DNA of 63,973 bases, filler included, from Dimorphilus gyrociliatus (lineage: Eukaryota; Animalia; Annelida), in NCBI GenBank assembly GCA_904063045.1. It is 4 parts of 4 records of this genome, joined end to end, with 100 filler letters (N's around TTAATTAATTAA, not from the genome) between each part and the next. Parts side by side here need not be neighbours in the genome. Positions count along the whole stretch, not along the records: positions 19,093 to 48,629 come from CAJFCJ010000233.1; 3 more parts are not named here. The stretch is one strand, 5' to 3'. The notes below the pieces were generated by a model. The model saw only the letters and a program-made list of their open reading frames with translations, was not told where the DNA came from and searched no databases. Position numbers and translations under genes: made by a program. Each line of letters begins with the position of its first letter. The first letter of the stretch is position 1. Positions 19,093 through 48,629 of the stretch are shown here, in pieces.

Positions 19093-19326
19093 AGAATGCT
19101 TAGAGTTGATAACATGTGGAGTTAATGAAATAATACTAGAACCAGTAAATGAAATATCGTTATTACAAACAATACAAAAGTACTTGAAAATATTTGAACC
19201 TTCTTCTAAGTTTAGTAGAATGAATGAAGTTTAATAAAAGCTGTAAATAAATTTTAAATTTCCTTATTTATATAAATATTATTTTTATATAAATTTTAAA
19301 TTTTCTTATTTATATAAACATTATTT

Positions 19327-20480
19327 GGTGGGTGGGAAGTTCATTACCCCTTCGATCAAAAAATGATTTTTTTGGAAAATACGAGAAGTAGTAGGGGAAG
19401 GGCATAAAAGTTATTCAAAAAAAATTTTTTTTTGTGTTAAACAAAAATAACACTAGAAACAAAAATAATTAAAAATTCTCTTTAATAATACTAAAAAAGC
19501 TTCATTTCCATACTTTCTTAAAAAAAAGCACTTAGCAAATATATATTCCATATATTGACTCGATGAAAGGCAGTTTCTTCTTATATATTGCTTTAGGAGA
19601 GACCATTGATTTTCAATTGCTTGAGTATTAGCTCCGGTATGTGGATCTATAAAGTTCTCATTGTGGTTCACTTTATCATGAATATAGCCCATAGATGATA
19701 ATTTCTCATATCCAGGCCAGCCATCTGTATAAATAATTGAGTTTTTTTCAATATATTTTTCAACAATTTCATTTATAGTGTTTTTTCTTCTATTATCTAC
19801 TTCTTTAAAAAATGTTTTTTTGGTATAAATATCAATTCCACCTATTATTCACTTTTTTTTATATATTCTTCCAATGTTATATTTTCTTTTAGAACATAAG
19901 CTTTCATCTATTTCGACTATATGTCCTGGACCTCCAATTTTTTCATTCATTTCATTACTCATTATTGTGTATATAGTAAAGTTTAAGATTTTATTCCACT
20001 TTGTGATAGTTTTAACAGTTAAATCTTTTAGTTCTTTTATTATCTCGAACCAATTCATATACATATTACAAAAAAAATAAACATAGTCCAAAAAAATGTG
20101 TAATTTTATCTTTGTTCTTTTCATTACTGTACTTTCAAAAATGGAGTTATGATTTTTACAATTATAACACTTATATCTGAATGTGTCTAAATGTTTAATA
20201 ATAATCATCTCCTTGTTTATACAAGTTGGACATCTTCTAGTTCGTTTTATTAAATTTTTATTAACAAGGAAGTCAATTGTTCTGTGTTCATCGGATGTTG
20301 CTAATACTAATTCTCTATAGTTCATTAAGGGAAAAATATAAATTAAATGAATAAAACCTTTATTTTAAAAAGATTAGAAAAAAAAATTTGAAAAAAAATT
20401 CAAAACCCTTCTTCTAAATTTCCTCTAGATCACAAAAAAATCATTTTTTGATCGAAGGGGTAATGAACTTCCCACCCACC
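19327..20480 (-). mobile_element. Merlin (IS1016/ISXO2-like) DNA transposon, near intact
   Basis: Perfect 48-bp TIRs (19327-19374 / 20433-20480) and 8-bp TSD CATTATTT. Transposase 20325-19453 has a Zn ribbon, VEIDES, YTDGW and TQAIENQW, with one in-frame TGA at 19849-19851. Confidence 0.93.
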
Positions 20481-20644
20481 CATTATTTTCCTTATATAAA
20501 CATTATTTCCCTTATTTATATAAATATTATTTTTATATTTTATTAATAAGTATTATTTTACTCTAATTATTATATATTAAACTAAATAAATAAAAATAAT
20601 ATTAATAATAAAATACATTAAAGTCTTTATTTAATAAAGTTTTG

Positions 20645-21244
20645 CTATTGAAACATTTCATCTGGATTTGATATTTCATCATCTTGTTTATTTGTTTTAT
20701 TAATTTCTTTTCCAGTCCAAAGGTCTCTTAAATCATCTCCAAATGGCATTTCCAGATCCTCATTAAAATTATTAATGCTCTTTAAATCTGAATCAAGTGG
20801 AGTGATAGGATCAATTTCATTATATATATTTTTAAACTCACTAGATCTAATTGGATTAAACATATTCTTTTCTCCCATTAAATTAATTACATTGTTATCA
20901 AATTGTAAAGGTTTTTCAAGCTTTTCTATCTTTATTGGTGATAAACTTTTCTTTTTTACTTCATTTTTGTTGTTACAATGTTTTACTTTAACCTTTTTCT
21001 CTTTAGCTCTTCTATTTTGGAACCATACTTGAACAGCACGCATGTCCATTTGTAGCTGCTCACTTAGTTTCTTTCTTACACTTGCAGCTGGTTTTTGATC
21101 AAACTCAAACACTTTCTCAAGAATCACTTTATGATTCTTTGGTATCCTTCTTCTAGGTTTTACATAGAATGGATTGTAATAAGAGCTTTCTACGGATCCA
21201 TTATCGTTTCTGTGAAAGGAGTCAAAGAGATTGTGTTTGTCCAT
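20645..21244 (-). CDS. Homeodomain protein, fungal/microsporidian (HD-10-like) type
   Basis: YNPFYVKPRRRIPKNHKVILEKVFEFDQKPAASVRKKLSEQLQMDMRAVQVWFQNRRAKEKK. Intronless; CCC immediately before the ATG. Confidence 0.88.
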   Translation of the reverse strand: MDKHNLFDSFHRNDNGSVESSYYNPFYVKPRRRIPKNHKVILEKVFEFDQKPAASVRKKLSEQLQMDMRAVQVWFQNRRAKEKKVKVKHCNNKNEVKKKSLSPIKIEKLEKPLQFDNNVINLMGEKNMFNPIRSSEFKNIYNEIDPITPLDSDLKSINNFNEDLEMPFGDDLRDLWTGKEINKTNKQDDEISNPDEMFQ

Positions 21245-22440: not shown

Positions 22441-23993
22441 TACCTCCATTTTCCCCGATTATAGAAGTATATCACAAATTTCCTTAATTGTCACTGTTTC
22501 TTATATTTTGATAAAACATAGAATAAATGTTACATTTAAATCAGTTTGCCCCTAATTAGGAACTTTTGTAATTATAATTAATTAATTCAATTATACAAAA
22601 TCAAATTTATTAACTTCATGTTTTGATATTTTTATTAATAGAAATTTAAAATTGCTTATTTGAATAAAAATATTCTAAATTGGAAATCAATAGTAATAAT
22701 AAATATAATTGATTTTTTAAAATTACGCATATTTACTTGATTAGTTCTAAAGTACAATCTAAAATTTTTTAATAGAACTTTGTTCTACTTTTTAAGAGAT
22801 TTAAAGTGTTTAAATATATATAAAAGTATTAATTATTACGTATAATACTTTGATTTATCCAATTTATTTTTACCATGGATCTTTATATTCTAACCATTGT
22901 TAGGTAGAATTACGTATCTTATATTTAATTTTATGTTTTCTACTTCGTTTTTTAATCATATTCTAGTGGTTGTTCTACTATCCTGAGTTCAAAAGATGTA
23001 GAATGGTTCATCGGAAGGGGCCTTTGACCAAGAAATATAAGTGGAAACGTCATGTTAGGCTTTCATACTATCAAATATATCAATTTTTAGAAAATTAGAA
23101 CACTTTTCCTTAAATAATTTCACTACCTATCATAATAATAAATGTTGTCTATCATTCTATTACACTAATTTAGTAGTATAAATTTATATATAACCTTTCC
23201 CCTCTTATATAGTTAGAAATACTTCAATCAGTACAATAAAAGAAAGAAAGCCTTCTAGTAGTTATTTATTAACCAAATATAATTCTATTTTTGTTAATAA
23301 ATCACAAATAAGTTATTACTTATATAAAACTGGGTATATGATTTATACCAATAAATAGAAAGACAAATTATAGAAAAAACAATGAAAGAAAAGAACTTAT
23401 ACCGGAATTCTATTAAAAAAAGAAAAGGTCCATTTTATGAACAACACATGGATACACTTACACAAAAATTGTTGCTATGAGAAAATTTATTAGTAAATCC
23501 TATTAGTGATCAAAAGCAGTGAAGTTCCCCTTTATAATAACTGCAATACTTTCCAGTGTAGTAGTGCTATATACTATAAAAGTAATATTACTTGAATAAT
23601 TCCCAGGTGTAAATAATGATAGTTATAGACACCTTTCTGACTCAATAGAAACTTTATCAAGTTTCCATAATCTTTTTCAGCTAAATATAAACCTGTACAC
23701 ACATTTTCCTAAATTTTACAAAAACTTATTTATATTAAAGGAAATTTTAATATAATCCACATTGATAATAAAAAGGAGTTTGTTAATGTATAGAACATAG
23801 AGATATAAATAACACATGGAGGACCATGAACCCCATAAAACATGGAAAAATTAAATATAGCGACATAGCTATAAAAAAATTGAAAAATCTCCTACATTAA
23901 ATGGTCACAACTAGATCAATCATCTAAATAAACTTTTATTTGAATGTAGTAACTCAACTTTAATGTTACTGAACAAACACCATAATCTATATA

Positions 23994-25474
23994 CAGTATG
24001 CAAAAAAAAAATTCGGACAAGCAAAAAATGCTTGTAAACCCTCTATATTATTATATTAAACAGCGATGTATATATAAAATTTCTTCAAAAACTCTTTTCT
24101 AAACTAATTATATAGTTTATCTTTGCATAAAACAAGGCTTGATTCGTTAGTCAATATTTTTAAAAACTGAATGCAAAAAAAAAATTCGGACAAGATCAGA
24201 AATTCATTTTTCCTCCATTATCTTTATAAAAAATCAAGGTACAAACACCCATAATGTACCGTAAATATAATGATATCACCAGAGGTAAAATAGCAGGGCT
24301 TGTAGATCTTGGAATGACAAATAAGGAAATTATTGAAAAACTTAAAATACCTAAATCTACAGCAAGTGACATTATTAGAAGATATAAAATAACAGGTAGT
24401 TTTGGGAGAAAGCAAGGGTCTGGTCGTCCCAGTGTTTATAAAGAAGATGATATTAAAGAGATTCTCAAGATAAAAGACAAAAATAAAAAAGAATCTGCCC
24501 CGTTTATCGCCAAAAAAGTAGTAGAATCTGGAATGGTTAAATCCACGCCTCAAACAATTCGTAATGTATTAAAAAGTAGAGGATTTATTGCTTCTTCTCC
24601 CGCTAAAATACCATTATTAAGGGATCACCAAATAAAGTCGAGATATGCAATCTGTTCAAAGTGGTCATATGAACCTAATAGCTTCTGGGATGATGTGATT
24701 TTTTCAGATGAAGTCCCATTTAATTTATATAATAGTGATGGAAGGCAATATGTGTAGACAAAGAAGAGAATGAGGCCTGATCTGGATTACAGTACTAAGC
24801 AAGTTAAACATGGTGGAGGAAAAGTGATGTTGTGGGGCTGTTTTAGCAGTAAAGGAGTCGGTAGAATAGCATTAATAGAGGGGAAAATGGATAAATATAA
24901 ATATGTAGAGATATTAGCCAATAAATTGTTTGTTTCTGCCGATTCTCTAGGAATGAAGAGCTTTAAATTCCAACAGGATAATGATCCAAAGCATACTGCA
25001 GGATATACTAAAGAATATTTCAAAACTAAACAGATTCAAGTTCTTGATTAGCCCTCTAATTCACCAGACTTGAATCCTATTGAAAATTTGTGGGCAATCT
25101 TAAAGGAAAAACTACGAGGCATGAAATTTAAAAATCAAAAAGATTTATTTGATAAAGTAAAAAGTGAGTGGACAAAGATCCCTAATGAAACATGTGTTGC
25201 GCTAGTAAAATCAATGAGAAAGCGAGTTACGTCCGTTTTAAAAGCAAAAGGTGGCATAACAAAGTATTAAATAATTTGTCCGAATTTTTTTTTGCATAAG
25301 TAAATAAAAATCTAGACTAAAATAACAAATAGAGCATCTAAAAAAAAATCATATTAGAATGTAAACATTTCACTCTCATATGATAAATTATTTATAATAA
25401 AGTTAATTTGTTAAAGCCATATTTTTAGAGATTTTTAATATTTTTGCTTGTCCGAATTTTTTTTTTGCATACTG
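23994..25474 (+). mobile_element. Tc1-family DD34E transposon, IR/DR type
   Basis: TA flanks; 34-bp outer TIR CAGTATGC(A10)TTCGGACAAGC; inner direct repeats at 24171-24194 and 25276-25297. Transposase 24254-25270 (SDE, QQDND, PDLNPIE; 34 residues from D to E) has in-frame TAGs at 24755 and 25049 and no frameshift. Confidence 0.93.
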
Positions 25475-28400
25475 TAAACACGCATTAAATAACTGAAAAT
25501 AACTATAAAAGGACAACCACATAGTATACACTTTGAGATATGTTGCAGATTATAATAATATAGTTAACCTTAAATATCGGTTAAATTTTTAACTTAAAAG
25601 GCTTCGAAATGTGCAGTCTAGCAACTTTTATTTTGAAGATATTTGTAGAATTACTGCTATCTTCAAAAATGATGTTTCAACAGTCAATAATTTCTGCTAA
25701 GTACATTTTATTAGCCTTAAAAAATATAATCAATTAGAAAATAATTTAGATAAGTAAATAAATTTATGTATTAAATTAATATTAAAAAATTCCTATTAAA
25801 ATTAGTACAACAGAATGATGTACAATAATAAACTATGAGAAATTTATTTATATAAGCCGATAACAAAAACAACTTTTCATCTTAATGACTATTAAAAATA
25901 GCTGCATACTTCTTTCTGGGGAGAATTTTAACACATAAACAGATGTGTTATTTGGGAATTTAGTTTATTTTAGTTATTATTTGTCACATTTTCATGACAA
26001 TTGGGTACTTATTTATTGAATAATCTTGTTTATCTTTCAGTGATTAACTTTAAAAAAATAGCATTTTATATTCACAATTATCAGTATCGATATTCATATT
26101 TTAAGTTTGTAATCTCTTTTATATTTAATATATTATCATTTATATTTAAAAAATACGCTTATTTTGTCTGTGTTTTAAATATTTCAAGGAAAATATAGTT
26201 TTACTTTTTTGAACTTCTATTTCGTCAGATTTTACTACTTTAGACGGAGTTTCTTCTACAAATAAACATAAAATTATTAAATTATGCTATAAAATAACTT
26301 TAATTTGTGTTTATCCAATGTTTCTGGTATTTTATAATAAGCGGTATTATATATATTAATAATTATAATTTTATACTATAACAATTATTTTTTTAAACCA
26401 AATAGACAATTACAACATTCACAGGTTTTAACAAATTGTATTTAAGCAAACTATGGAAAGTAGCCAAAAGGCATAGATATTCTATAGATGAGTAAAATAT
26501 TAAAATACTTACACAGCCTTAAAAGGTATACCTGTGACTACGTGTCTAGTATATAACTTCCCTTTTAACTGTATTATTAGCATTGTTTAAACGCTTTTAT
26601 AATATAACTATTCTTAATTATATCACTTTATTTCCACATATGAAAATAAATCCCCAAGATTGTATTTATAAAGCCCCCTATATTTTTCACTTTTAATTCC
26701 ATATTTAGGTATATTTAAAATGTTTTAAATATGTTTTTTACACGCTTCCTCAGTAATTATATAATAAATTAAAAGAACTTTACTTTTAAGGACTAGGAAT
26801 CTTGAAATAAGATTTCCTTAATCAATACTTCAAATAACTTTTGTTTTTCGGGGGGCTCTTAAAAATAAATATCAAAAAAACAAGCAGATAAATTTATTTA
26901 AAACAAAGTTTTGTTAATTTCCATTAGCGCACCTCCTTCATGAACGATGACTCTTTTTTCAGAAATTTATAGTCTTATAGTATGTTATTTAATTTTCTTA
27001 TGTTATTTCTTCTTGTTTTTAAGTAATTTTTTAACCACTTCCATTAGTTTTCTATATTTTTGTGCGAACTATTGGTATAATTTTATCTTAAAACGCATCT
27101 TTACGTTTTATAGATAAATTTTGATATTCATATAACCTAATATCATAGTTTTCTTTCCTACTCATATGTATTAACATTTTAGTTTTCTACAGATGATTTT
27201 TTGAAATGTATTTTTATCTTTATTTCTGCAATCTTAAAAAACAGCGTTATATTGCTCTACAGAGGCAACCAGCTATTCGAACATGTTCATAGCACATTCC
27301 TATATTACACTTACTAACACTATTTATATGTTTTTTAGTGCTTTACCCTGCCTCCTATTTTAGTCAAATGATCTAATCTGTTGTTGCTACGAATTAAATC
27401 AATTGGCGTTTTAAAGAATTATGAATTAACCTCTTAACCACTATTTATTCTACCTGAAAGTGTTTTAACAGGCCATTTGTATATTATAGAAATTGTTTTT
27501 TACAATACTGCTTTATCGCTTGCAACTACTGACCATTTTCGTATAAATAACTTGGATTTAGAACGTTTTTAGACTTACAGAATCAAATTAGTCCGTTAAT
27601 AACGTGATGCAATACCCAAAAAAGTCTCCTTTCCACTCTTTTTACAATACGATTTTTTTTCAAAACTTCTAAGTTACATGACCAAGAAAAAAAGTGCGCA
27701 GAAAGATCATTTTTCATATAATTATATTTTATTTAAAATTACTTAGTTTAGTTTTACGGGACTTTAAGAGGGACTTAAAAGCAATTTTTAGTAGAAAACT
27801 AAATAAAGTAAAATTATATTTTTAGTCTAATAAAAAGTATAAAATATTTATCTATATTATAACAGAATATACAATAGAAATGAAAGGCAGCTTTCCTGTA
27901 TTATAAAGTGACACAGAAAGGTTAAAATAAATCGAATTCAAGATTAAAAAGGATAAAGTTCAGAGCTACTTTTGTAGTTTTTATGAGAAAGTACTTATAT
28001 TTTATGCTACATATTAGTTATCAATTAGCCACCTATTTTTATAAAGATAACACGACTTTAACAGCAACGGGATACAAACACGAGTCTCAGACTTATAAAG
28101 AATTAATAAAGTATAAAAAATAGACTTATTGCTTACTGAAACAGATTATTTTACAAATTTAAGAAAAAATAGGCAGGTTACTAACCTAATTGTAAAACAT
28201 CACTAGATGGTAAGAATTTGATGTACAAAGTCTTTTAAATAAGGAATATAAATTATTTTACTGGTATGTATGAAAAAATGTAAAGAAACATTACAGCTCA
28301 AAACTAATTAACCAAGTGTAACTCGTCAGGATTTAGCAAAAAATGTATCAAGATAGTATTAATTAAATATTGTTAGGATAATAGATAAAAGTATTTTCTG

Positions 28401-29408
28401 TTATTATTTTTATAGAATTTAAGTATTAAAAGATATAATTAACAAATATCTGAAATAGTTATAAACCATTGATTTATTAAATTGTTTCAGAGCTTTAATT
28501 TTATTTTATAAATAAACACCTTTTGTGATGAATAAAAGAGACTTATCTTTACTTAATAAGATAGGTTTTAGAAATTTTGTTTTATTGTTTTTTTTATAGA
28601 AAATATTTTCAATTAAACAAAGTTATAAAAAAGGCTTATTTATTAATTTTTGAAATACAAATAATATTTTTTTAATTTTAATATCAAATTCTAAATTAGT
28701 AAAAAAATTAACTTTGAAAATATTTTTTTTTGATTTTTGATCTTAATATCAATTCTAATAAATAAAAAAATAACTTTTAAACAGTGAGAATTATAAAAAC
28801 TTTTTTACTTTAATATTAAGTTCGAATTAGTAAAAATTAAAAAACTAATTTTTTATATTTTTTATTTTTTACTTTAATATCAAAATTCTAAATAAATAAA
28901 TTAAATACTTTTAAAACAGTAAGAATTATATTAAATTTTTACATTTTTATATTTTTTGATTTTTGATCTTTAATATCAAATTCTAAATAAGTGAAAAAGA
29001 TGACTTTTTTGAATTACATTTTTGTTTAATTTTTAAAATTAATTAAAAATTTGAAAAATTTTGTTTCAGGTTTTATCATAAAAAGATTTTCAAAATTGAT
29101 CCTTAATGACTTTCAAAATAAAAGAATTAATAAACTTTTACGAAAAGCTTTCTGCTGAGAGTAGCAGTGCATCATTCGTCAGTGGCTCCACTGACAATGA
29201 TAATCACTGTATTAGAGAGAATGAGATGGTTGATGGTTTGTAAAGGACAATTTAAAGATCAAAATGAAGTTGCTCTATTTCAAGCTCGTTTATAAGTAAT
29301 GGTGAAGAGATCTCTTTAGAAGTTAAAGAATATTGTAAGCAAAAAGAACACAACTCTAGTTTAAATAACCTTTGTACTGCCAAAGAAGCTGATCTTCCGA
29401 ATGGATCA

Positions 29409-30542
29409 ATGCAAACCCTCCCAAAGGATTCCAAAGGTAATACAGAAAACGTCGATGATAAATCTAGTCCAATACAACTCAGTGATAACGATTCAAAAAC
29501 AAATGGTATTAAAGGTTCTAACAAAAAGTTTGATATCAATAAACACGCTTTATATAAGATCATAGAAGAGGATAACGTTACAGAGGAAAATCTAGAAAAA
29601 ACTAAATACAGGAAATTTCTTGTATCTGATATAAATGATAAAAAAATAATTAGTTACATTAGTAAGTATGACACTGAGCCATCACTATATGGCAAAAAGT
29701 GGTATTCTAATGACAAGGACATGGGCTATAAAGCCGATCAGAAGATATTGTCCAACTCATATGAGTTGAAAATACAATATCGCTTCTATACGGATGTTGT
29801 ACTGACAGAAAAGTTAGATGAGGCAAATCTTGAAAGCCCTAGTAAGGTTAACAAATACAAAGAAAAGAAAATTTTTAAATATTCACAACATATGTTAAAA
29901 AATTACTTAAACAACAATGTAAAACTCCCTCTAAAGAAGAAAGCTAAAATTGCATATGATAAGTTTATGCATGGACAGAGCTTGCAAGGTGATGACTTTT
30001 ATGCATCACCACAAATTTACGAGCTGATAAACTATATCAAAAAAAATTGCAAAGTAATTAACATGTTTCGAGTAGAAGGTGAGAGAAATGTATATGAGGC
30101 TCTTGCAAGAAGAATAGAGGATTATCCAGCAGAAAAAATAGACTTTAATAAATATGACATGTTCGATTTATGTTCTGCCTTAAAATACTACTTCAGAGAG
30201 ATTAAGGGTGGTATATTGACCAGAGAAGTAACTGAATCTTTATTCCATGCCTTTATGAATAACAAACAGGGCGATCTCAAAGAACTTTCAAAATACTTAA
30301 GAGGTTCTCTCTACGGTGAGAGAAGAAAGTTCTTAGCAGCAGTTTTTAGCTTATATAGTGAAGTAGATAAATACAAATATTACAATATGATGGGAATAGA
30401 CAACTTGTTGATATGTTCTTTCCCTAGTTTTTTTGCTGATGTCCCAATTATACCAAGGAAAATTGAAATAATTACAGTTATGAGAATACTCGTGGAGAGT
30501 TTAATAGTGGAGCTGGAAGCAGAATACCCAGTCTCATTATAA
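29409..30542 (+). CDS. RhoGAP-domain protein (true start possibly 29106)
   Basis: MFRVEG arginine finger, ALKYYFRE, NMMGIDNL..SFPSF at the C-terminus; low-complexity N-terminus. Confidence 0.85.
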   Translation: MQTLPKDSKGNTENVDDKSSPIQLSDNDSKTNGIKGSNKKFDINKHALYKIIEEDNVTEENLEKTKYRKFLVSDINDKKIISYISKYDTEPSLYGKKWYSNDKDMGYKADQKILSNSYELKIQYRFYTDVVLTEKLDEANLESPSKVNKYKEKKIFKYSQHMLKNYLNNNVKLPLKKKAKIAYDKFMHGQSLQGDDFYASPQIYELINYIKKNCKVINMFRVEGERNVYEALARRIEDYPAEKIDFNKYDMFDLCSALKYYFREIKGGILTREVTESLFHAFMNNKQGDLKELSKYLRGSLYGERRKFLAAVFSLYSEVDKYKYYNMMGIDNLLICSFPSFFADVPIIPRKIEIITVMRILVESLIVELEAEYPVSL

Positions 30543-32539
30543 AAGAAACAGAAGAATTTTTCGACAGAGAAGATGTCACTAATAATAGAGTAAAGCCTGG
30601 GTACTTAAAATACATATGTTATAATTAAATAGATTGTACTAAAATATTTTTATAATTAATTATTACCCTTCATTAAATTATTAAATCAATGTGACATATT
30701 TAAATATAAATTAACCCCATGTTTTATAAAGATAACATTATAAAAATTACTATAAAACTATATTGAATTATTTTAAAATTCTTAAAACTATACAAAAGAT
30801 TAAAAAAATCATATACATATTATTATATCATAAAATAGAATAAAAGGATACTAAAAAAAATAGATGAACGTTTCTTTGTTTCGATCAAAAAAGAAAGGCT
30901 AAACAAAGTTGAAGTAAATTAAGATATAGGCACAGCACCAACTCGCTATGTGGCGAGTTGGTAGGATACGGAGAAAGATTTAGGACTAAGTTTAATTTTG
31001 AAGTAGCCAATCAACAGTATTTTCCAATGCAATCGACAAACCATTAATACCAGAAATTTCATAATTTAAAATTAATTATTGTAATTTATATTCTTCTTTA
31101 AAATTGCTATCAGGAATTTTGATGTTTCTTACAGCTAAAGTTTGGATTACTCTATATAGGCATCTTTACTTCTCTTTGCAAGTTAGTTAATGAGATCCAA
31201 CTATGTTTGGACGAGCCATTATCGACCTATGGTTTAATCCTTTATGCGAAGCTCCAATTATATTTGTATTTCAAGGTATGTTTTTTTTAGTCTATTAAAG
31301 ATGACCAAAGCTCTAGACTAGATATTGTATGAAATAGTTGACTTTCTTCAAACTTCTCAAGGAATGTTTTCACGAAATAACTAAATAAAGCTTTTGATTA
31401 TTCTATTTTTCGGATTCTAAGATTAGGTTTTTAATATCTTGAAAAGTATCGAATACATCTTCTATTAGATAAAAACAATATGTTGTGATTTTTTTGTTAT
31501 ATTTCTGATTTGAAGGTGTATTGTAGTTTTTTACATACTTCTTAATAGATTATCTAAACTTAAAACAGCATCCATGTACGTTGTGTTGTTAAACATTGTG
31601 TTTAACGAGTTTATTAACACTTTTTAAAGTACATTATAAAATTTAGTGATGTAAAATGCCAATTCTATTTCCTATATTGATACGTTTATTATAAAGTGTT
31701 CTTATTTATTTTCAAGTAAAATAAGAGATAAAGAAAAAAACTTACATATAACCTGTTCTTAGGTAGTTATAACTGCCAAAAGCCATTATGATCAGATTTG
31801 AATCTTCCCTCAATAAAAATTACTCTCAGCTTCGCTATAGTCTCTTTTTGATAACCTGATTAAAAAAATACATCTCTATTTAATTTAACATTCCGTAGTC
31901 GAATTGCAAAAATTTATCTCTCCTAAAATTATATCGAAGACTTCCAGGAAGATCGGGACTGTTTGGTTTTAAGCCGCTAAATTTACTGTTATTTATTTTA
32001 GCCACATAAATTTTTAGAGAGGGTTCTATAGGTATTGCAGGGATTATTTATAGTTTTACAGTAGAGATGACAACTATGACTATATCAGAGGTTCTTGTAT
32101 TGGTAGGTAAGTAGCTTTTCTCCATTTTCTGCATCTTTAAACGAACTTCTATTTTTTTTAGTCTGAATCGTAACTACGAACAACTGTGATAACAAACACA
32201 CCACTTTCTAATCGATAATTTTTTCCATAGATTAAGTTCGATAAGTCATAAGTATAACCATTTAGGACAGTAATCGGGCCTCGCCGATTTGGATCAAATA
32301 TAATACATGAAATTTAACGGTTAAGTTTTTCTTCTTATCCTAGTAACTCGCTAAATGGCAAGTTCTTGCTATGCCAATTTAATCGTCAATATAGTTTCTA
32401 TTGATATTATACACCCTTAAAGTGCTCTTCTTGAAGCTAATATAGTATTTTTTGTACTTCTAAATCTAGTTCATTTCGCATATTCGGTTTTAAAGGAGTT
32501 CTTCTTAATATATCCTAAACATTCCAATTTCTTCTTCAT

Positions 32540-34355: not shown

Positions 34356-34395
34356 AGTATGCCTTACAAATCACAAATCATACGAAACAAAGTAA

Positions 34396-34906
34396 NNNNN
34401 NNNNNNNNNNNNNNNNNNNNNNNNNNNNNNNNNNNNNNNNNNNNNNNNNNNNNNNNNNNNNNNNNNNNNNNNNNNNNNNNNNNNNNNNNNNNNNNNNNNN
34501 NNNNNNNNNNNNNNNNNNNNNNNNNNNNNNNNNNNNNNNNNNNNNNNNNNNNNNNNNNNNNNNNNNNNNNNNNNNNNNNNNNNNNNNNNNNNNNNNNNNN
34601 NNNNNNNNNNNNNNNNNNNNNNNNNNNNNNNNNNNNNNNNNNNNNNNNNNNNNNNNNNNNNNNNNNNNNNNNNNNNNNNNNNNNNNNNNNNNNNNNNNNN
34701 NNNNNNNNNNNNNNNNNNNNNNNNNNNNNNNNNNNNNNNNNNNNNNNNNNNNNNNNNNNNNNNNNNNNNNNNNNNNNNNNNNNNNNNNNNNNNNNNNNNN
34801 NNNNNNNNNNNNNNNNNNNNNNNNNNNNNNNNNNNNNNNNNNNNNNNNNNNNNNNNNNNNNNNNNNNNNNNNNNNNNNNNNNNNNNNNNNNNNNNNNNNN
34901 NNNNNN
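34396..34906. other. Sized scaffold gap (511 N)
   Basis: Run of N without the TTAATTAATTAA linker. Confidence 0.95.
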
Positions 34907-36855: not shown

Positions 36856-37841
36856 GGTAAAATTTGCTTTGGGGACCCCCTTAAAATGTAGTATAAAATT
36901 AAACCAGCTCCATTTTTAAACAATTTTTTTTATTTCAAGAACTTTCATCGAGTTAATAATTTCTGAAAAAGGATTTTCTTTTTTTATAAATAAATAATCA
37001 TTGATATGATCTTTAAGATTGCATTTTATATTACTTCCTCGAGATTGAAGGTACTTTTTCTGCCATTTCCATTGGTTTTCAATATTCTGAGTGTGGACTT
37101 CCTTCATTTCTTTAGAAAGAAATTCAGTTTTATGCTCTACTGTAAAGTGGGCATAGTTATGTGCTTTTACGTTACAATAGCTTTTCCACTCATCTGTTAT
37201 GATTACCGAATATTCTTTAACATTATCTAAAATGATTTTATCGAGTGATGCACTATCTTTTTTTTTGGTTATTTCGAAAAAACACTCTTTCGTTATTCTA
37301 CATATCCCTCCAACAGCCCACACCTGTTCTAATTCTCTTCCTATATTGTATTTACGCTTGCTTAGTGCACTTTCATCTATTTCAACCACCTTTCCATCAC
37401 CTCCGATCAGGTTGCTATTTTTTTTATTATAGGATCGTCTCATCAAACCTAAAACTATGCTGAATAACTTATAATTGATGTTGTATTCTCCTTTAATTCT
37501 ATCATAGTTGGTTTTAGCGCACCATTCATAAATCATAAAAATAATTTTTTCAAGCGGGCCTTGATTCCAGCGAAAACAGCCCATGTACGAACTGATAATT
37601 TACTTTTATTACACTTCTTAGACTTACAAGACCAAATATAACCATCCCCTCTATGATGATTAATTAAAATCATGCTTGTTTTACATGTTTTACATTTATG
37701 ACTTTTTTTCAGTATATTTAAATCCATCAACCATGACAAGAAACTTTCACGACAGATTGTTTTCTCATAAAGTTCTCTGCGTGTTAAAATCATTAGCATT
37801 CAATATAATTTAATTTTAAGGGGCCCAAAGCAAATTTTACC
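36856..37841 (-). mobile_element. Merlin transposon, second family, one frameshift
   Basis: TIR GGTAAAATTTGCTTTGGG..CCCCTTAAAAT and 8-bp TSD TAAGTTTT. ORFs 37799-37533 and 37584-36916 carry VEIDES, ITDEW and TQNIENQW. Confidence 0.9.
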
Positions 37842-39213
37842 TAAGTTTTCTTGTTCTTATTTCTTTGTTAGAAATAATATAAGACTTTTTATATCCATTA
37901 TTATTTTCCTAAATGATCTTATATAATTCCTATATTTATTAGATAAGCTTCCTTGCATAAACACAATTTATTTAATAATTGAATTTGTTTTATTTTTTTT
38001 TGTTTTTATATTTCTTTAAAGAATTTTCTTGATTTAATTTTGATATTAAAAAAATTTTAAAAGCTTATTTTATTTTTTATTTTTGTAAATTTTTATTAAG
38101 GGAAACATTTTTTTAAGGAGACTGAATTGTAGATGAAATATCATCTTGGAAAGCATTTATTAAATAACTTATAATGCTGCATTGCGTTCTATTAGCGATC
38201 TCAATTTATTTTTGTATCTTAAGAGTTAACTTCCATTTCACTTAAGTTCTCTTTGAATGATAAAAGCTGATATCTTTCTTGCCCATGATTTTAATTAAAC
38301 TATAAATTTAAATAATATATACAACTTTTATAGTAAATTCTTTATATAAATCAAAATCCTATCAGATAACGATAGCTTTTAGGTGTATTGTTATTATATA
38401 TCGAAATAAACTATCATTATCATCTTATTAATTATTATAAATAAATTAAAACTTACAGTTATTGTACATTACTTTAATTAAGTTTTATTTCTCGGTACTC
38501 CCTTCATTGGGATTATAGTTTATCATGCTTTTTCTTCTAGGATCATCTCGTGATCTTAGCTTTGTTCCATCTCCTTTTTTCTTGTTAAGGTGGATCATCT
38601 TTTGTTTTTTTTTTGTTTTCTCTCTGGATTTTCTGTCTCCCTAGTTGTTAAACTAGGTTTCATTCCTAACTGAAATAGCAGCCACTTACTCTCTCCTATT
38701 ATCTTTCGACTTTTGCTATAGCTTTCAAAATAGATGATTTTGTCTTTTATTAAAGACGTTGACATTGAGGGACCAAAAAAAACAATTTTATAAATCTCCC
38801 ACCAAATTTAGAATGCCTGATTTCGAAAAAAGACGTCGTTTTTAATATATTTTATATTAAATGGATTCTATTTCATAGAAACTTATTTTTTATCAAAATA
38901 TTATCTTTAACATTTAACAGATATTTGTTTCTTTATAAAACATTAAAAAAATAATTAAAGTGAAAAGAAATATAGTCTGAATTTTTAGATAGAACTTGTT
39001 ATTTCACTTACAGAATCAAGATTGTAGAAAACATTAAAGATACTGTATTATTTTAAAAGTAAAGACATAACTTTTTAGTGTAAATTTTAAAAACTTTCTA
39101 ACTAAAAATGACTTCAACAATTTTTTGAGTTTAAGGTGCTGTTTTTCATATACTTAAAGTTTCTGGTTTAATGAAATTATAAAATAAAAAAAACAAGCAG
39201 AGGAAAAGAATTG

Positions 39214-39630
39214 GGATCAGGGTTAAAAATTTCCCCTATAGGGGAAATTTTTAACCCTAACTTTAATATATGACATTTAACCTAGAAAATGAATTATCAC
39301 TTATTTTACACAATCGAACTTCTTTAATACAATATTTAGGAAGTAAAGTACTTTAAAAAGCATTGTGTTTTGTGAGGATTGTGGTAACATTTTAAAAGGA
39401 GTAAAGTATAAAAAAAACAGAACATTGAATCTTTATGGAACAAATTGAAACATAGAATGAAAAAGTTAATGGGTAGTAGTGAAAATGATCTCAATGAATA
39501 TTTAAAAGAGTGGATATGGAAAGATAATATTGGTTTAAAAAATTTTGAAAATGTTATAAATTTAATTAAATTATTATTATCAAAATTTTTAACCCTAAGA
39601 TGACATAGGGGAAAATTTTAACCCTGATCC
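39214..39630 (+). mobile_element. Non-autonomous Merlin deletion derivative (417 bp), third family
   Basis: TIR GGATCAGGGTTAAAA(A/T)TTTCCCCTAT and 8-bp TSD AAGAATTG. Remnants FCEDCGNIL and NIESLWNKLKHRMKKLMG..EYLKEWIW. Confidence 0.88.
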
Positions 39631-40499
39631 AAGAATTGCATTATAAATTTTGTAACAATGATTGGATACTTATTATTGAAAAGAAAGCGTAAACTATAAA
39701 TAAAAAAATTATAATATAATAGATTTTTAAGTCTGGATATCTTAGCTAAACAGCTTTACTATTGGCTACTAATTATTACAGATTAAGTAGATTAGTTAAT
39801 AAAAAACATTATTTAGTATGTTCATAAATAACTTAAAACCATTTTTATCATTAAAAGCTTATTTTCACTGATTTCAAGCTTTTAATTTATATTGAAAAAA
39901 CTTTATTTTATTGTAATTAAGTTCTTCTATTTTTACTTTTAGAATCATTAAAGTAATATTTTGTTGTATGTAATTGTACTCCATCTATTTTCAAGCCCCA
40001 TATGATACGAGTCTGGATCGATATAACTTTTTAAAATAAATCAAATAGAGCATAATTATACTTTAAATTTGTTTTTTATAAGGAAATGGGCAAGGGTATA
40101 ATTGTGACCCTGCCAAAATAGCTAAGTTATTTTCTATTTATGGACTTTCATCAATAAGTTAACAGCTTCAAAACAGTGTTTTAAAATAGTAAATAAGTTT
40201 CTTAATTTTGGCTTTTGTACTATTTTCATCTTTCTATAACTACCACATAATATTAAAGTCTTGTCATTATTAACTTGGTGAATCTTATAGGTTTCTGTTT
40301 CATATAAGGAGTTTTTAATTATAGTATTACTGTTGAGTTTACTAGGTCTATACTCTTTAAGTTATAGAACTTTGTTGCCAATTATTATATTAGCAGAGTG
40401 ACTGATTTATACTGCATATGACTGGTATTATTTCATGACTACTATTGCGTTATTATTCATGTTAATGATTTGGTACAATATGCTCAGGTTCCTACCTCT

Positions 40500-41075
40500 A
40501 AATAAAATGAACGGCTTTGTCTTTGTTGCGCTATGTGGTGTGTTATTATATTTATAATTATTTCTGTTAATTGCCTAGTCCATTTAAAGTTATTCCCTCA
40601 ATTCCCCTTTATTAACTTGTCTTTTATAGCTCTGTCACAGCGTTCTACTTGTCCTTGACAACTTGGATGATAGAGCTTTACTCTATACATTTCTAAAACA
40701 CTTTTGACCCATTTATTCACAAATTCTTGTCCATTATCGGTGTGAATACTTTTTCATGGGCCTTCGCTTTGAAGTAATTTTTCAAGTATGTCAGGAAATA
40801 TACAACCATGCTTTGAGGCAGCTGGATACACAAAGCCAAATTTAGAATATGAGTCTATACTTGTATATCATTACTTCATTCCATCACTTATATTAGCAAA
40901 GCTCGAAAAATCAATAAGGTCGACCATTAGTCTTCCACTAGCAGTAATCTTTTTTGATGTTTCAGGGAGGAAGCTTTTGACATCAAGTTTTATTATTGGA
41001 CAGTATTTCCCATTTGTCAACATAAAAATATTGTTTTTACTCAATTGATCTGACTCATGATATTTTTAATATCTT
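40500..41075 (-). pseudogene. Retroviral-like (rve) integrase relic
   Basis: KYHESDQLS.., RLMVDLIDF, SIDSYSKFG, IHTDNGQEFVNK, HPSCQGQVERCDRAIK, YNNTPHSATK..PF with stops and frameshifts. Confidence 0.75.
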
Positions 41076-42223
41076 ATCGTTCAAAACCAGTTCATAATAC
41101 AGATTACCACTTTTTCTATATGATCTTTCTTTATAATAGGCTCACCACTTTCAAGATACAATATTTGCTTTCCCTTCTAAAGCTCCTCCTCTGTTCCTGA
41201 TTGAAACCTTCTTTGTATACTTTATAGCTAAGATATCTAACTATCAGGGGTCTTCTAATAAATCAATCTTTATTAAACTCCCCATACTTTATTAGACAAA
41301 AGGCTTTTATACAGATTTAAAATATTTTAAAGCCTTTAACAATGATGAAAGTCCATAAAATGAAGATATTTTATAGTATTTTGATAGAGACCACAATTAT
41401 ATACCAGGCCTTTCCTATTTAGAATAAAGTCAATCATAAGCATTCTCTACTTGATTTACTTTAAAAAATTATACCGATCATGTCCCAATTTATATGTTGG
41501 CGCAATTACATATAATAATATATAAAAAAGTTAGTTTTAGAAAGGTCCGCAAAAGCTTGTCAAGTATACTTTTTATCCTATAGAAGTGTCTTTAAATGTG
41601 TTAAATAGTATAAGAACCGGGTTGAAAAGGATTAAATACAATCAATGGAAAGGCATTTAAATCTCTTTTATTTTATTTTTGAAATGATTTTTATAAAAAG
41701 AAAGCTTATTGATCTAGTATAAAATATGGAACCTTGATCTTATTACACCCCCTCTTCTTATCAGTATTATCAGCACTACAAGAATTCTCGAGTCTTAGCA
41801 TCATTTTACTAATCATGAATCTATGATAACATATTCAAAAATTATATAGGTTCGAAAATCCTGTCCAAAGAATAAACTATATAAAATTTTATTGAGAAAC
41901 TTGTAGAGCTCTCATAAATGATTGAAAAAAATAATAAAGTTAAAAATTATATCGAAAAATACAATTTATTTATTATTTAATCGCTTTATAAAACATTATA
42001 CATTGGTTACTGAGCGATTAAAAAAAAAGTTTTTTATTACTTTTTTAATCTTTATATTTTGTTAACTCTTCAAATGGTGAGTGAAAAAGTTAAACACTAT
42101 ATAAGTGAAATTTTGAATGTTAATGCTAAGCCAAATGTTTCTGCTATTTCTTTATTCCTCAGATTCAGAAGTTGAAACGATCTGTTTGAGGAGTATATAA
42201 ATGCAGCAAAGAATTATCCACCA

Positions 42224-43216
42224 ATGATAACATCTTTACACTTCTTTGACAATAACAAAAATTTAATTTATGGACCTTCTCTGCGATTCGACTTAATCGA
42301 CTCCGATGATATAGCATCGAAAAGAATGAAAAATGGGTATCTTGTTTGTAGATTTTCTAATATGGATAAATGCATTGCAATATCTGTTTTAAACGAAATC
42401 TCAGAGCATAAGATGTTTGGTCTTCTTCCTAAAAATTTAACAGAATTTGTCCTTAGAATTTCAGAATATTGGCAAAATGGTTTAGTATTCAATGGCAACG
42501 AAAATAAGGATAAGATAAAATTGGATGTTGTTGAGCACATGGACGCTATTATGAACACCAGAGGTGCAGTTGATTATTCTTATTGTTATGGAACTGTTAT
42601 TTGCAATCCCAAGCTTTCCAAAGAATCTATGCTTAAGCTAGAAATGATAAAGGGGAGCTGGAAAACAAGCGATTCATATAAAATAAAAGAGAATAGAAGA
42701 AAGGACTTCAAGGAAAGCCCTATTAATATAAATATCCCAGAGATGGAAAGTCATTCTATTAAGGACAGAAAGGTAAAACTGTTTAATTATAGCTACGTCG
42801 CATCCGCCCCTATTAAACTTATCAAGAAAAGCTACAACACCTATAACCTTATGGTGAATGTCCCAATTACACACATTAAACTTGTATTTCAAATGCCAAA
42901 GCTTGCCACGAATATACAGGTGCATAGGAATATTGGAGTTGTTAAAATCAACACTCGATTTAACACGATTGAGTGGGAAATTACAGATCCAACAACAACA
43001 GACATTAAGATAGACTATAAAATGCCTAAACTTATGTATGATCAGCTCATGATAGAAGAGTTGAAAGGAAATAGTATCATCAAGGTGGAGTTTAAAGGAG
43101 ATCTACTATCATATTCAGGACTTCAGATTAATAAAGTATTAATTGATGGTAAAATTAAGGAGGCGTGGGTAAATTATACATTCAAATCCAAAAGATATGA
43201 AATATATGATAAATAG
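42224..43216 (+). CDS. Divergent adaptor-protein complex medium (mu) subunit
   Basis: Longin-like start MITSLHFFD; mu-homology motifs IKLDVVEH..G..YGTVIC..KLS and SYSGLQI...WVNY..K..RYEI. Compact and intronless. Confidence 0.8.
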   Translation: MITSLHFFDNNKNLIYGPSLRFDLIDSDDIASKRMKNGYLVCRFSNMDKCIAISVLNEISEHKMFGLLPKNLTEFVLRISEYWQNGLVFNGNENKDKIKLDVVEHMDAIMNTRGAVDYSYCYGTVICNPKLSKESMLKLEMIKGSWKTSDSYKIKENRRKDFKESPININIPEMESHSIKDRKVKLFNYSYVASAPIKLIKKSYNTYNLMVNVPITHIKLVFQMPKLATNIQVHRNIGVVKINTRFNTIEWEITDPTTTDIKIDYKMPKLMYDQLMIEELKGNSIIKVEFKGDLLSYSGLQINKVLIDGKIKEAWVNYTFKSKRYEIYDK

Positions 43217-43881: not shown

Positions 43882-44649
43882 ATGAAATTATTAATAAAAA
43901 TTTTAGATGAGGTTCTTATGTTATCCTTACTATTCGAAGAAGTATTATGCTTAGAGAAACATAGTCTATATCATAAACTAGTTTTGATCGCTATTTTATG
44001 TGCTTCTTTGTTTATTTCATTTTTTGGTATTAAAAATAAAAAAATTTGTTTTTTCTTAATATCGCCCTTAATTTGTCATAAAACTGTCATAAACATTAAA
44101 TTCTATACATCAGGCTCAAAGAGCGAATTATCCTTTCTCTTACTTAAATTAAAAGAAGTGCTTTTTACAGCTTTTCATAGTAACTTTTTGCTATATGGGA
44201 CTGTATTTCTAATTACAACTACAATATTATATGTGTTGTTGAACAAAATACATATTCTACTATTTTTTACTATATTGTATATTCTATATAAGCATGAAGT
44301 TATCAACTTCCCAACGAGCTACAGTGATATATACTTTTTATTTAAGTTGTTTGCTGCTATTATTCTAGGATGTATCCTTTACTCATTCTGTAAGTATATT
44401 TCCAGAATAGCATTTGCTCTCTATTTTAGTACTTTTGGATCATTATGTGGAATTTTATGTTTAGATAATTTATTTCTATATAAAATAAAGCTATTTGGCT
44501 GTATTACTGAATGGATCTTGAGTGAAGGGGACTTAAGTATCAGTTCTGCTATCTTTGTACTTTTATCTATTACAATTAGCTTTATAAATCAGCTGGGTTG
44601 GATTATAAAGCAGAGTAAGAGAGAGCAAACAGTGTTTCGGGTCCTATAA
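43882..44649 (+). CDS. Multi-pass membrane protein (DUF4203/TM7S3-like, tentative)
   Basis: About 7-8 hydrophobic segments; ALYFSTFGSLCGILCLDNL resembles the AFxGSxxxxxGxD motif. CCC at -6. Confidence 0.6.
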   Translation: MKLLIKILDEVLMLSLLFEEVLCLEKHSLYHKLVLIAILCASLFISFFGIKNKKICFFLISPLICHKTVINIKFYTSGSKSELSFLLLKLKEVLFTAFHSNFLLYGTVFLITTTILYVLLNKIHILLFFTILYILYKHEVINFPTSYSDIYFLFKLFAAIILGCILYSFCKYISRIAFALYFSTFGSLCGILCLDNLFLYKIKLFGCITEWILSEGDLSISSAIFVLLSITISFINQLGWIIKQSKREQTVFRVL

Positions 44650-44840
44650 TTTTTATATAAAGTCGCAAATATAATTTACCAGTGAACAATAACCGTTTAC
44701 ATTGTAAATTCGTCTTAAATCAAGTTATAAAAGATCGTTCAGTACAAAACCTATACAGAAGAAGGTGAGCTTTGGCTTATTTTAATATTAAATAAATGTT
44801 TATTGTTGATTATCATGTTATTTTTTATTAAAAATCTATA

Positions 44841-46272
44841 CAGTCTGTAAAAAAAGTGAACAAGAAAAATTTATAAGCAAATTTATGAAAACAACAATTT
44901 TATATTTACATAATACCTTAAAAGAATAAACAATGATCATGATAGTAACAAGTATCATTTTGAAAGATTCTATTATCAGCTTAACTTCATTTTATCTCAA
45001 GAAAACTTTTTGGACTGTAAAAAAAAGTGAACAAGATTGTAAAGCATCATTTACCTCCAACAACGTATAAATGGTATCTAAACCCCCCCATTATGGCTAA
45101 AAGTATTGATGATGAAACAAGATGGAGTATAATTCTACTATATAAAGAAAAAATGACTTTAATAAAAATCTCGGAAAAAAAGGATTAGTCCCTCCACAAT
45201 ACATAATATTATTAATAAACATATAAATCATGGTACAACCAAACATTTAGGAAATAATGAAAGGCCTTCAAAGCTTTCAACGCGTTTGGCTACTTATCTT
45301 TTAGATCAGAACAACAAAAACAGATTCATTTGAACAAGAAAAATGGTAGATAAAATAGGAAAGGTTTGTGATGTAACTATATCTTACACTTCCATAAAAA
45401 ATTAGTTTAACATGCTAGAGATCATAGCTTATAGACCCTATTCAAAGCCTCTTTTAAAACAGAACCATATATTTTCAAGATATAGTGCAAGCAGAAGATG
45501 GTTAAAGATGCCAGAAAGTAAACTAAAAACGATGACATTTTCTGATGAGTCGAAATTTAACCTATGTAACAATGATGAAAGTCCATGTGTATGAAGAACA
45601 AAGACTAATAAACTTGATTCTAAGAATATTAAGAAAACTGTCAAATTTGGAGAAGGATCAGTAATGTTTTGGGGCAGTTTTTCATACTATGGTGTAGGCG
45701 AATTGAGATTTATTGAAACAAAGATGGATGCTGCATACTATTGCAACATGCTATCTAGTTATTTATTTGCTTCTGTACAAAAAATGGGGTTAACGGAGTA
45801 TTTATTTGTTCAGGATAACAACCCAAAGCATACAAGTAAGCTTGCAAAAGAGTTTTTTGTAGAAAGTAAAGTTAATTTAGAACTATGGCTTGCACAGTCC
45901 CTTGATTGTAACCCAATGGAGCGTCTTTGGGCCATTATTAACATGCTAATAGAAATGAAAAACTTTAAAAAAGGTGAACTAAAAGAGGCAATTATGAAAG
46001 AGTAGAATTCAGTAACATCAGAAATGTGCAAAAAATTGGCCTTACACTTTGAAAAAACTGCTTATCTAGTATATAAACAAAAAGGTGGCTATATTAATAA
46101 ATAATTATTTTTTAAATAAAATGTTTATAAGCAGATCATAGATTTTTCAAAATCATACTTGTTAGTATCATGATTATTGTTCATTTTTTTAATATATGAT
46201 GTAAATAAAAAATTATTAATTTTCAAGAGTTTTTTAATAGATTTTCCTTGTTCACTTTTTTTTTACGGACTG
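44841..46272 (+). mobile_element. Tc1-family DD34E transposon, IR/DR type, decayed
   Basis: TA flanks; imperfect TIR CAGTC(T/C)GTAAAAAAAGTGAACAAG; inner repeat at 45015-45035. Transposase from 45093 has frameshifts and stops, with FSDES, VQDNNPKH and DCNPME. Confidence 0.88.
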
Positions 46273-48629
46273 TATATCTTTATTGCTCTTTTTGATTGTA
46301 TAACTATGAAAGACCGTTTTTATAAATTTATTTCCAAGGATAAACTCTTCCAAGCTTATTTATATCAAAGCTTACGGTATCTTATGAATTCTTTAATACT
46401 AAAGACGTACCATTTTATCTTCAGCTGCCATAAATTACTTTGTACTGTATTTGGCAGATAATTACAGCAACTTTAAGTGATATCCCCACTCTTTCTTTTA
46501 TATCTAGAATCCTCTATTTAGGTGTTATTTTCTGCTTGCTTTTATCTATTACATATGAATATAAGTTTAGCCTGATTTTAATACTTCCTTGTATATTTAT
46601 ATCCATTACAAAAGCTATGCATGTGATATATATTTTTATAGTTTGTCAATAACTATATTTCCTTCCACTATAGGTATAAATGAACATTTTAATATGCTTA
46701 AATCACTTATGTCTTCGTCTTGATTGGTATAAGTAAACTTGTAAAAGAGTATTCAAAATATAAAAACCATTATATTTAACTACATACACGCCCTTCTACA
46801 ATGTTTATTTATTATGAGTGGTTATTTATATGTATTGATATGTGCAATAAAAACAATATTACTTAAAATACTAAACATTAAAAGCTTGGGTAAGAAATTA
46901 CAGAGAAATCATATGAATAGAGATTTCCTGTTTTTTAACGCTTGATTACATGCAAGACCTCCTTACAATGTAAATAAATTAAAAAGTTCCTCTCCTCTCG
47001 ATATTACTACCTAAAAGCAGAAACGGACTCATAATATAATTTGTAATTTTTCATACAGTCTAAAAAAGTATATTCTGAGAATGAGGTTAAATTAATACAC
47101 TATTGAAGGAAGTCCACAAATATTATCTGTTTAAAAATGGAGGTAAAGGACATACTTTTTGAATAGCAAATCTAATGAATTCAATGTTTATTGTATATAA
47201 TAATTAATTCTATCATAATTAAATATGAGTATAATATAAACAGATTTATATTCTTGGGTTATAAGAAATTCTAGGAATAAACACTTGTTGTATCTATTTA
47301 TAAAATAAATAAAGAATAAAATAGACTCTCAAAGCTTTATTAAATAGAAAATTAACTTGAAGATTCAATATAAATTAGTTAATATAGGCTGCAACCAAGC
47401 CAAAAAGGCTTAATGTCCTTTAGAACGTCGTTTAAATATTATAAAATCTACTTCAGATATAGAAAAAATTGAATTAAATTTTCGTAATTGATTTAATTTC
47501 ACGAAGTATACAATAGACAGTTCAGTATCGTATTAACATATATTTTTATCAATAAAATAAACGGTCCTTTTTCCACATCTATAATAATGAAAACAGTCTT
47601 TCAAAGAAATAGCATTTATGGGGGAGGGGGGAATTGCGTACACAACACTTATTTAAGTTCTATATATAAATAGCAAGGGGTCTAAAATAATACAAGAAAA
47701 AAACATACACGCATTAGTAAGTAATTAAACAACTAGAACATTCCAATGCAGAGTTATATTCCACCCAGTTTGTATAAAACAATAGAAAATATATGCATGG
47801 TTATAACTTAATCTTAAAATATCCCATTGTATTACTATATACAATCCTTGAAGTCCTCCTGGTTTTTATAAACCTCTTAAATGTTTAAATTAAAAATGCC
47901 TGTAATATTAACGTATAATATTATACTAATTTCAAATAAGTCTTCTAAAGGTCGGCTTTTTTCTAGAATATTAGGAAGGTTAATAATAATTTTATAATAT
48001 ACGAGATGTTTAACTACAGAGGATATCCGCGTTTTTTAATTTATTTGAGTCAAGAATATACATTTTTTAGCTTTATTATGAACTTTTAATAAAAATACAA
48101 TCAAATCTCTACAATGTAAATATTCACTCATAAAAAAAAGAAATTAAATCTTAATCAAAGGTATTTTATATTACTCTTTTCTCCTCTCTTCTCTTCTTTT
48201 GTCGTTTTTCAGTCTTATTAAGTCTACTTTTTCCTTGAATTGATGAAAATTATTTTTTTTTTAGTTGTCAGTTCATCTCAATGGAACTCAATACCTTTTA
48301 GGTAAGCTTCTTTGTATGAACACACCTTCCCTTAATAATTTAATTCATTTGACTTTCTTCATATCAATATTAACTTTGTAACTCTCTGTTTAAAGTTTAT
48401 AAAGAGAAGATCTGAAAAAATCTAATTTTTTCTCCTATATTATTTTAAGAAGCTGTGAACATCCATATTAGAGAACTCTGACTGTATAAGCACTTATATA
48501 AAATAATGAAAAATTTTATAACTTTTAAAAGCAAAAAGATCACTTATTTTGAATGGGATGTTTCTATCTAGAACACGCTTCTTTTGATTAATAATTAGGG
48601 TGTTAGGCTTATGTTATAAGAGACATTGG

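Follow-up and report, generated by a model that had tools for sequence, protein, structure and literature searches.

We analysed a 63,973-nucleotide stretch of DNA (the window) from the genome assembly of the miniature annelid Dimorphilus gyrociliatus (GCA_904063045.1) and followed up the part at positions 19093–48629, which is the right-hand 29.5 kb of the 57,901-base scaffold CAJFCJ010000233.1 (C233; other contigs of the assembly are numbered likewise). This piece very probably comes from the nuclear genome of a microsporidian, an obligate intracellular parasite related to fungi, in the sequenced animals; the parasite contigs would have escaped a similarity-based clean-up. The scaffold carries a microsporidian ribosomal protein, its repeats are limited to small contigs among the scored matches and core parasite genes are absent from those contigs. 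The novelty lies in the organism, for which no close relative has been sequenced, and in its having been overlooked in this reference. A first-pass annotation of the window had proposed that the scaffold is microsporidian and that the parasite was unrecognised. The first proposal is borne out by a ribosomal protein P0 tree, by small-subunit (SSU) and large-subunit (LSU) ribosomal DNA (rDNA), and by Merlin, Tc1 and leucine-rich repeat (LRR) families held in common with the rDNA contigs. The second agrees with the genome paper, in which the word microsporidia does not occur (PMC7854359), and with a literature search that returned nothing relevant connecting Dimorphilus or Dinophilus with microsporidia.

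The gene for P0 lies at C233:20278–21039, on the same scaffold as the piece. Every named match among the top 16 of a database search with this protein is microsporidian. The best matches reach 50–51% identity; named relatives include Dictyocoela muelleri (48%), the Trachipleistophora/Vavraia cluster (47%), Astathelohania (45%), Spraguea (43%), Pseudoloma (42%) and Edhazardia (41%), with Nematocida lower at 36–39%. The acidic C-terminal domain (PF00428) is missing from the C233 protein, as it is from its microsporidian matches. In a maximum-likelihood tree (LG+C20) of this one marker, on which the phylogeny rests, the C233 protein falls inside a 19-row microsporidian clade (support 99/95) that excludes Nematocida. 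The host has its own P0, which is spliced and animal-type and sits on the multi-megabase contig C6. Entered into the same tree as a single 174-amino-acid exon, with the exons unjoined, it groups with non-microsporidian eukaryotes (100/99).

A search for microsporidian SSU ribosomal RNA (rRNA), which had been suggested at the outset, was positive. Contigs C222 and C184 carry a 1353-nt SSU rRNA that scores 1178 bits on the Rfam microsporidian model RF02542, and an LSU of about 2.65 kb starts about 4 nt from it, going by the model boundaries. No match to 5.8S rRNA (RF00002) was found beside this SSU. The host rDNA, on C5, C164 and C223, differs in having an 1833-nt SSU (RF01960) and a separate 5.8S. 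A reduced SSU, a 5.8S fused into a short LSU and a minimal spacer are the textbook arrangement of microsporidian rRNA. The first 10 kb of C222 (C222:1–10000) also contain, at about 2000–7800, some 6 kb of 45–48% guanine plus cytosine (GC) content beside the microsporidian LSU, bordered by sequence of 16–17% GC and without any Rfam match. Either a long intergenic spacer or some other GC-rich element could account for this stretch.

Repeats tie the piece to a set of small contigs that includes those with the rDNA. When both halves of the piece were searched as DNA against the assembly, the 136 matches fell without exception on contigs from C79 onwards, one of which is C222. A search with an intact Merlin transposase turned 195 candidates into 131 matches, again all on small contigs from C79 upwards, including C184, and several of the Merlin copies have open frames of 300–340 amino acids. 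With an LRR protein from C233 (locus L009:3842–5800) as the query, 287 candidates yielded 108 matches, almost all of them on the same set of contigs and spread over about 30 small contigs. The contigs with LRR members include C181, C184, C119, C167 and C213, and many members have open frames of 400–1100 amino acids, some with stops. C184 has both Merlin and LRR family members, the latter flanking its microsporidian rDNA, and Tc1-type segments occur on C222. The resulting parasite bin amounts to at least 1.6 Mb in about 53 contigs; the size was taken from the contig count and the highest matched coordinates and is therefore a minimum figure.

The piece itself is gene-poor and rich in transposons. 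Its GC content is 25.7% overall and 16–33% per 1-kb window, compared with 34–35% at host loci in the same assembly. Exactly four long, intact, non-transposon open reading frames (ORFs) are present, which would be fast-evolving housekeeping genes and have no introns. They account for 12% of the 29,026 read bases, as against at least 32% for the mapped repeats. No transfer RNA or Rfam family was found in the piece, and no telomere repeat was found at the scaffold end. The left part of C233 has further Merlin and integrase genes, a 652-amino-acid LRR protein and a RING protein in addition to P0. The features of the piece are as follows (TIRs, terminal inverted repeats).

19093–48629, no strand: the whole piece, very probably a gene-poor, transposon-rich microsporidian nuclear segment.
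19294–20496, minus strand: Merlin transposon, recently inserted and broken (PF12762 DDE_Tnp_IS1595, 3.6e-15, with a zinc ribbon; TIRs starting GG).
20645–21244, minus strand: homeodomain protein, 199 amino acids, intact (PF00046, 6.5e-17).
23988–25477, plus strand: Tc1/mariner transposon, transposase frame broken by two TAG codons (HTH_Tnp_Tc3_2, 1.1e-9; DDE_3, 2e-7).
26846–27790, minus strand: old, decayed Merlin transposon (72–73% DNA matches).
27828–30846, plus strand: 3-kb segment that includes the RhoGAP gene, three copies in the assembly (C213:18656–21562, 88%; C200:41160–44013, 86%).
29409–30542, plus strand: RhoGAP protein, 377 amino acids, intact (PF00620, 7.7e-19, residues 203–343).
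30988–32223, no strand: unclassified dispersed repeat (76% copies on C203 and C192; 69% on C137).
33900–34395, plus strand: remnant of a decayed LRR gene, running up to the gap (ORF piece 34033–34242, LRR_4, 2e-6; stops read directly).
34396–34906, no strand: scaffolding gap (N); nothing coding depends on it.
36845–37855, minus strand: second Merlin family copy (PF12762, 5.7e-13; TIRs present; one frameshift between the zinc-ribbon and DDE parts).
39948–41511, minus strand: repeat with a frameshifted retroelement integrase relic at 40251–41059 (rve, 0.0014).
42224–43216, plus strand: adaptor-complex mu subunit (AP mu), 330 amino acids, intact, single copy (PF00928, 2e-17, residues 93–327).
43882–44649, plus strand: multi-pass membrane protein, 255 amino acids, intact (about 6–7 hydrophobic segments).
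44821–46281, plus strand: decayed Tc1/mariner-like element with TIRs of about 200 bp (DDE_3, 9.7e-4; inverted end matches).

The first-pass annotation had described four intact, compact and divergent genes (homeodomain, RhoGAP, adaptin mu and membrane protein) among Merlin, Tc1 and integrase elements. The same four long ORFs were recovered, and the elements are supported by Pfam domains, TIRs and copies elsewhere in the assembly; the family context of the RhoGAP gene and the decayed LRR gene at about 33900–34395 had been missed. It had also reported CCC motifs before ATG codons, which is right for two of the four genes. In the homeodomain gene CCC abuts the ATG (aacacccATG) and in the membrane protein gene it lies 6 nt ahead; the AP mu start is preceded by CCACCA, and the RhoGAP gene has no CCC. 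Across genes of the same composition class, CCC occurs no more than 20 nt from the start in 5 of 11, compared with a background of 5% (binomial P = 1.3e-4). A CCC-like motif just 5′ of start codons is a described microsporidian signal (PMC2803860).

The small contigs hold only part of a parasite genome. Every match to tubulin and HSP70 is on large contigs and none is on bin contigs, and the only EF-Tu-type GTPase on a small contig is a domain at C111:923–1525, in an uninterrupted frame of 454 amino acids, which may stem from the parasite, an organelle or a different contaminant. Divergent Mrt4-like, AN1 zinc-finger and separase-like genes cluster on C64, which is at least 215 kb long and has 25% GC; with its packed genes, C64 indicates that gene-dense parasite sequence also survives in the assembly. 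A 3.3-kb segment of this contig (C64:211897–215178) is 98.9% identical to C259:31703–34984 in opposite orientation, with the same three genes and 25% GC in both. The pair may represent parasite haplotypes that the assembler did not collapse, as in a heterozygous or diplokaryotic organism; it may also reflect two strains, or a duplication that happened recently. The assembly thus preserves a remnant of the parasite genome and not all of it.

The way in which the assembly was made suggests how such a remnant could arise. The DNA came from whole adult females. Bacterial, algal, fungal and protist contigs were discarded from the raw assembly, and four Blobtools rounds removed sequences with similarity to fungi and unicellular eukaryotes (PMC7854359, which cites Kumar et al. 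2013 for the approach). None of the contigs had the appearance of human DNA. Microsporidian DNA would have been present in the worms used for sequencing, and parasite contigs with recognisable microsporidian genes would have been removed by the similarity filter. The approximately 53 contigs, at least 1.6 Mb, that escaped would be those whose content is confined to rDNA, transposons, an expanded LRR family and genes of very high divergence. The loss of marker genes, combined with the retention of rDNA and of divergent, repeat-rich contigs, suggests selective escape rather than a missing filter step. The published assembly comprises 77.9 Mb in 349 scaffolds (PMC7854359, Supplementary Table 1; Martin-Duran et al. 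2020), and the GenBank assembly has 77,897,245 bases in 349 contigs. Flow cytometry gave a genome size of 73.8 Mb and k-mers 70.9 Mb, so that the assembly is 4–7 Mb larger (PMC7854359).

Several points weigh against an assignment of the piece to a microsporidian of the worm. The terminal branch of the C233 P0 is long (1.09) and its place inside the microsporidian clade is unsettled. The microsporidian-type rDNA sits on the sister contigs C222 and C184 and not on C233; the link between them runs through shared repeat and LRR families, some of which have only 26–36% amino-acid or 71–72% DNA identity. Searches of the assembly scored the best candidates only, so that the absence of matches from large contigs is a strong trend and not proof. 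TLC/NTT nucleotide transporters (PF03219) had no match in the whole assembly, and control genomes likewise gave no signal; as parasite tubulin and HSP70 are missing too, this absence probably reflects the incomplete bin. Finally, the worm itself, rather than its food or culture, is only the presumed host of the parasite.

Of the other explanations, the one that survives best, although we consider it unlikely, is that the microsporidian DNA came from food, detritus, gut contents or another organism in the dish and not from infected worm cells. The DNA was extracted from whole adult females, the several kinds of contaminant contigs removed in the paper point to a mixed sample, and a search for microscopy or published records of microsporidia in Dimorphilus or Dinophilus came up empty. 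However, microsporidia multiply in host cells only, and the length of the contigs assembled from PacBio reads, from 50 kb to over 200 kb, suggests that high-molecular-weight parasite DNA was plentiful, which would fit a live infection better than ingested spores.

We regard it as very improbable that the piece belongs to another AT-rich eukaryote (a rozellid, an aphelid, another fungus or a protist) and that the microsporidian rDNA comes from a different contaminant. The rDNA and C233 are indeed separate contigs, and the raw assembly held several types of contaminant. Against this, P0 is nested in the microsporidian clade that excludes Nematocida and has lost its acidic tail in the same way, the CCC start motif is enriched, and Merlin and LRR families are common to C233 and the rDNA contig C184. 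Still more improbable, if only slightly so, is host DNA, whether an AT-rich, transposon-rich stretch of the annelid genome or microsporidian genes that the host acquired by transfer: the scaffold is part of a curated, decontaminated host assembly and the host genome is itself AT-rich, with 31% GC (PMC7854359), but the host P0 is animal-type and that of the scaffold microsporidian, the repeat families were on no large contig among the scored matches, the GC content is 25% against 34–35% at host loci and the genes are intron-free and extremely divergent.

A microsporidian source also fits what is known of other members of the group. Merlin, Tc1/mariner and long terminal repeat (LTR) elements are documented in large, AT-rich microsporidian genomes (PMC4202319, PMC7313128). 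Anncaliia algerae, Edhazardia aedis and Hamiltosporidium resemble the piece in GC content (about 25%), low gene density, abundant Merlin, Tc1/mariner and LTR-integrase elements, and short, intron-free, divergent genes. They are not close to it by P0: the Edhazardia protein is just 41% identical to that of C233, and A. algerae and Hamiltosporidium are absent from the named matches among the 120 matches listed. In contrast to those large genomes, the sequence at hand is a remnant of at least 1.6 Mb. The nearest named P0 relatives (42–48%) are from the marine or aquatic Spraguea lophii, Trachipleistophora hominis, Vavraia, Pseudoloma and Dictyocoela, in one supported clade. Large LRR families with intact and decayed members occur in S. 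lophii and T. hominis, and the two published families are described as mutually unrelated (PMC3749934, PMC3486916). The LRR family of the bin resembles these effector-like expansions in its size and in its mix of intact and decayed members. Foreign contigs left in animal assemblies after Blobtools-type filtering are likewise small, distinct in GC content and without repeats in common with host chromosomes; in contrast to typical leftovers, here the conserved markers are gone while divergent, repeat-rich contigs and rDNA were kept.

A P0 identity of at most 51%, the long branch and the unsettled position point, on the strength of this one protein sequence, to a lineage without a sequenced close relative. 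We would give even chances to a broader proposal: that laboratory D. gyrociliatus carries a chronic infection by an undescribed microsporidian lineage whose sequenced relatives do not exceed about 50% P0 identity. This lineage would have a large, AT-rich genome, a recent burst of Merlin transposition and a big LRR family of effector-like proteins, and its remnants, at least 1.6 Mb and possibly several megabases, would lie unnoticed in the reference.

These contigs matter for the use of the assembly, because a widely used annelid reference, one that is central to debates on genome compaction, transposon load and gene number, seems to include parasite sequence. The approximately 130 Merlin copies and the large LRR family should not be counted as host, and parasite sequence may be included in the published assembly size, in the 'Mariner' and 'unknown' repeat totals and in the gene counts. 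The published host repeat table gives 0.67 Mb of Mariner, 1.03 Mb of 'Protein Domain-derived' and 1.37 Mb of 'Unknown' repeats and does not list Merlin (PMC7854359, Supplementary Table 4). For biology, the sequence points to a microsporidian from a culture of a marine meiofaunal annelid, in a region of the tree with big, transposon-rich genomes and LRR expansions. A near-complete parasite genome could come from public raw reads at no sequencing cost. More generally, similarity-based decontamination preferentially spares those parts of a fast-evolving parasite that are most divergent and richest in repeats, and repeat sharing combined with GC content can flag them.

The four intact genes of the piece differ in how far they can be assigned. 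The homeodomain protein is of the typical 60-residue type; it matches solved homeodomains generically, at no more than 46 bits, and no animal class can be assigned. The RhoGAP protein has a weak match in the PDB (ARHGAP7, 4e-7) and zero relatives in a word-index protein search, and the arginine in its MFRVEG motif, read by eye, is a putative catalytic arginine finger. It is the sole unbroken member of a small, mostly pseudogenised family, with stops in the paralogues on C213 (92% amino-acid identity), C200, C181, C299 and C201. Of the three copies of the 3-kb block, the one in the window alone is intact; the paralogues on C181, C299 and C201 are more distant and decayed. The block thus records the birth and decay of a gene family within a supposedly reduced genome.

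AP mu has eight relatives among 1.84 billion representative sequences, the best at 33% identity; a word-index protein search and a phmmer search of the PDB returned nothing. Used as a profile with its seven aligned relatives, it matches AP-1 mu1 (9e-21) and AP-2 mu (2e-18), followed by AP-3, AP-4 and delta-COP. About 90 residues precede the mu-homology domain and contain no Pfam domain, in place of the usual longin-like domain of about 140 amino acids, and the seven aligned relatives are equally short (280–347 amino acids). By these profile matches the protein is a predicted mu of AP-1/AP-2 type with a shortened N-terminal part. As a query against the assembly it did not detect host mu subunits. 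The membrane protein has no Pfam match even at E = 1. An Atlas feature score of 0.85 to PF13886 clusters (TM7S3/TMEM198-like) is a sub-threshold lead only, and a single-sequence AlphaFold2 model is all-helical but unusable (pLDDT 49.9). Exact-sequence look-ups for AP mu and ten proteins of the bin found no record, which does not show novelty.

The Merlin elements have the features of that superfamily: PF12762 (5.7e-13 to 3.6e-15), an N-terminal zinc ribbon (PF12760) and TIRs starting GG. The element at 19294–20496 has DNA copies of 93–96% identity on C200, C288 and C233:977–2096; compared with an intact copy it has 98% amino-acid identity and two in-frame stops (one TGA and one TAG). The second Merlin family copy at 36845–37855 has 91–94% copies on C156, C219, C215 and C151, and the decayed one at 26846–27790 matches the same contigs and places as it does (C266, C248, C79, C119 and C176). 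The Tc1/mariner element at 23988–25477 likewise combines HTH_Tnp_Tc3_2, DDE_3 and TIRs, which are about 36 bp long and start TACAGT, and has copies on C119 (98%), C328 (95%) and C151 (93%). Because some copies are 93–98% identical to others, some of these transposons were recently active. Older sequence is represented by the Tc1-like element at 44821–46281, with an 87% copy on C154 and copies of 69–73% on C270, C79, C276 and C156, and by the repeat at 39948–41511, with copies of 72–75% on C288, C217, C178 and C180. The integrase relic within the latter has 31–35% identity to an intact integrase on C233 (tblastn, 1.9e-31).

Gaps of N within scaffolds stem from scaffolding with long reads, for which SSPACE-LongRead was used (PMC7854359). 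No reading frame and no repeat or paralogous copy can be traced across the gap at 34396–34906; its left flank ends in LRR debris with stops and its right flank is non-coding. The join itself is unverified, but the flanks are alike in composition and each carries Merlin copies from families confined to the same small contigs, which indicates that both belong to one organism.

One further ORF, of 63 amino acids at 39412–39600 on the plus strand, lies inside a short repeat with 87–89% copies on C79 and resembles PRESAN (Plasmodium RESA N-terminal; E = 0.0015, below the Pfam cut-off), which is probably a chance match in AT-rich sequence.

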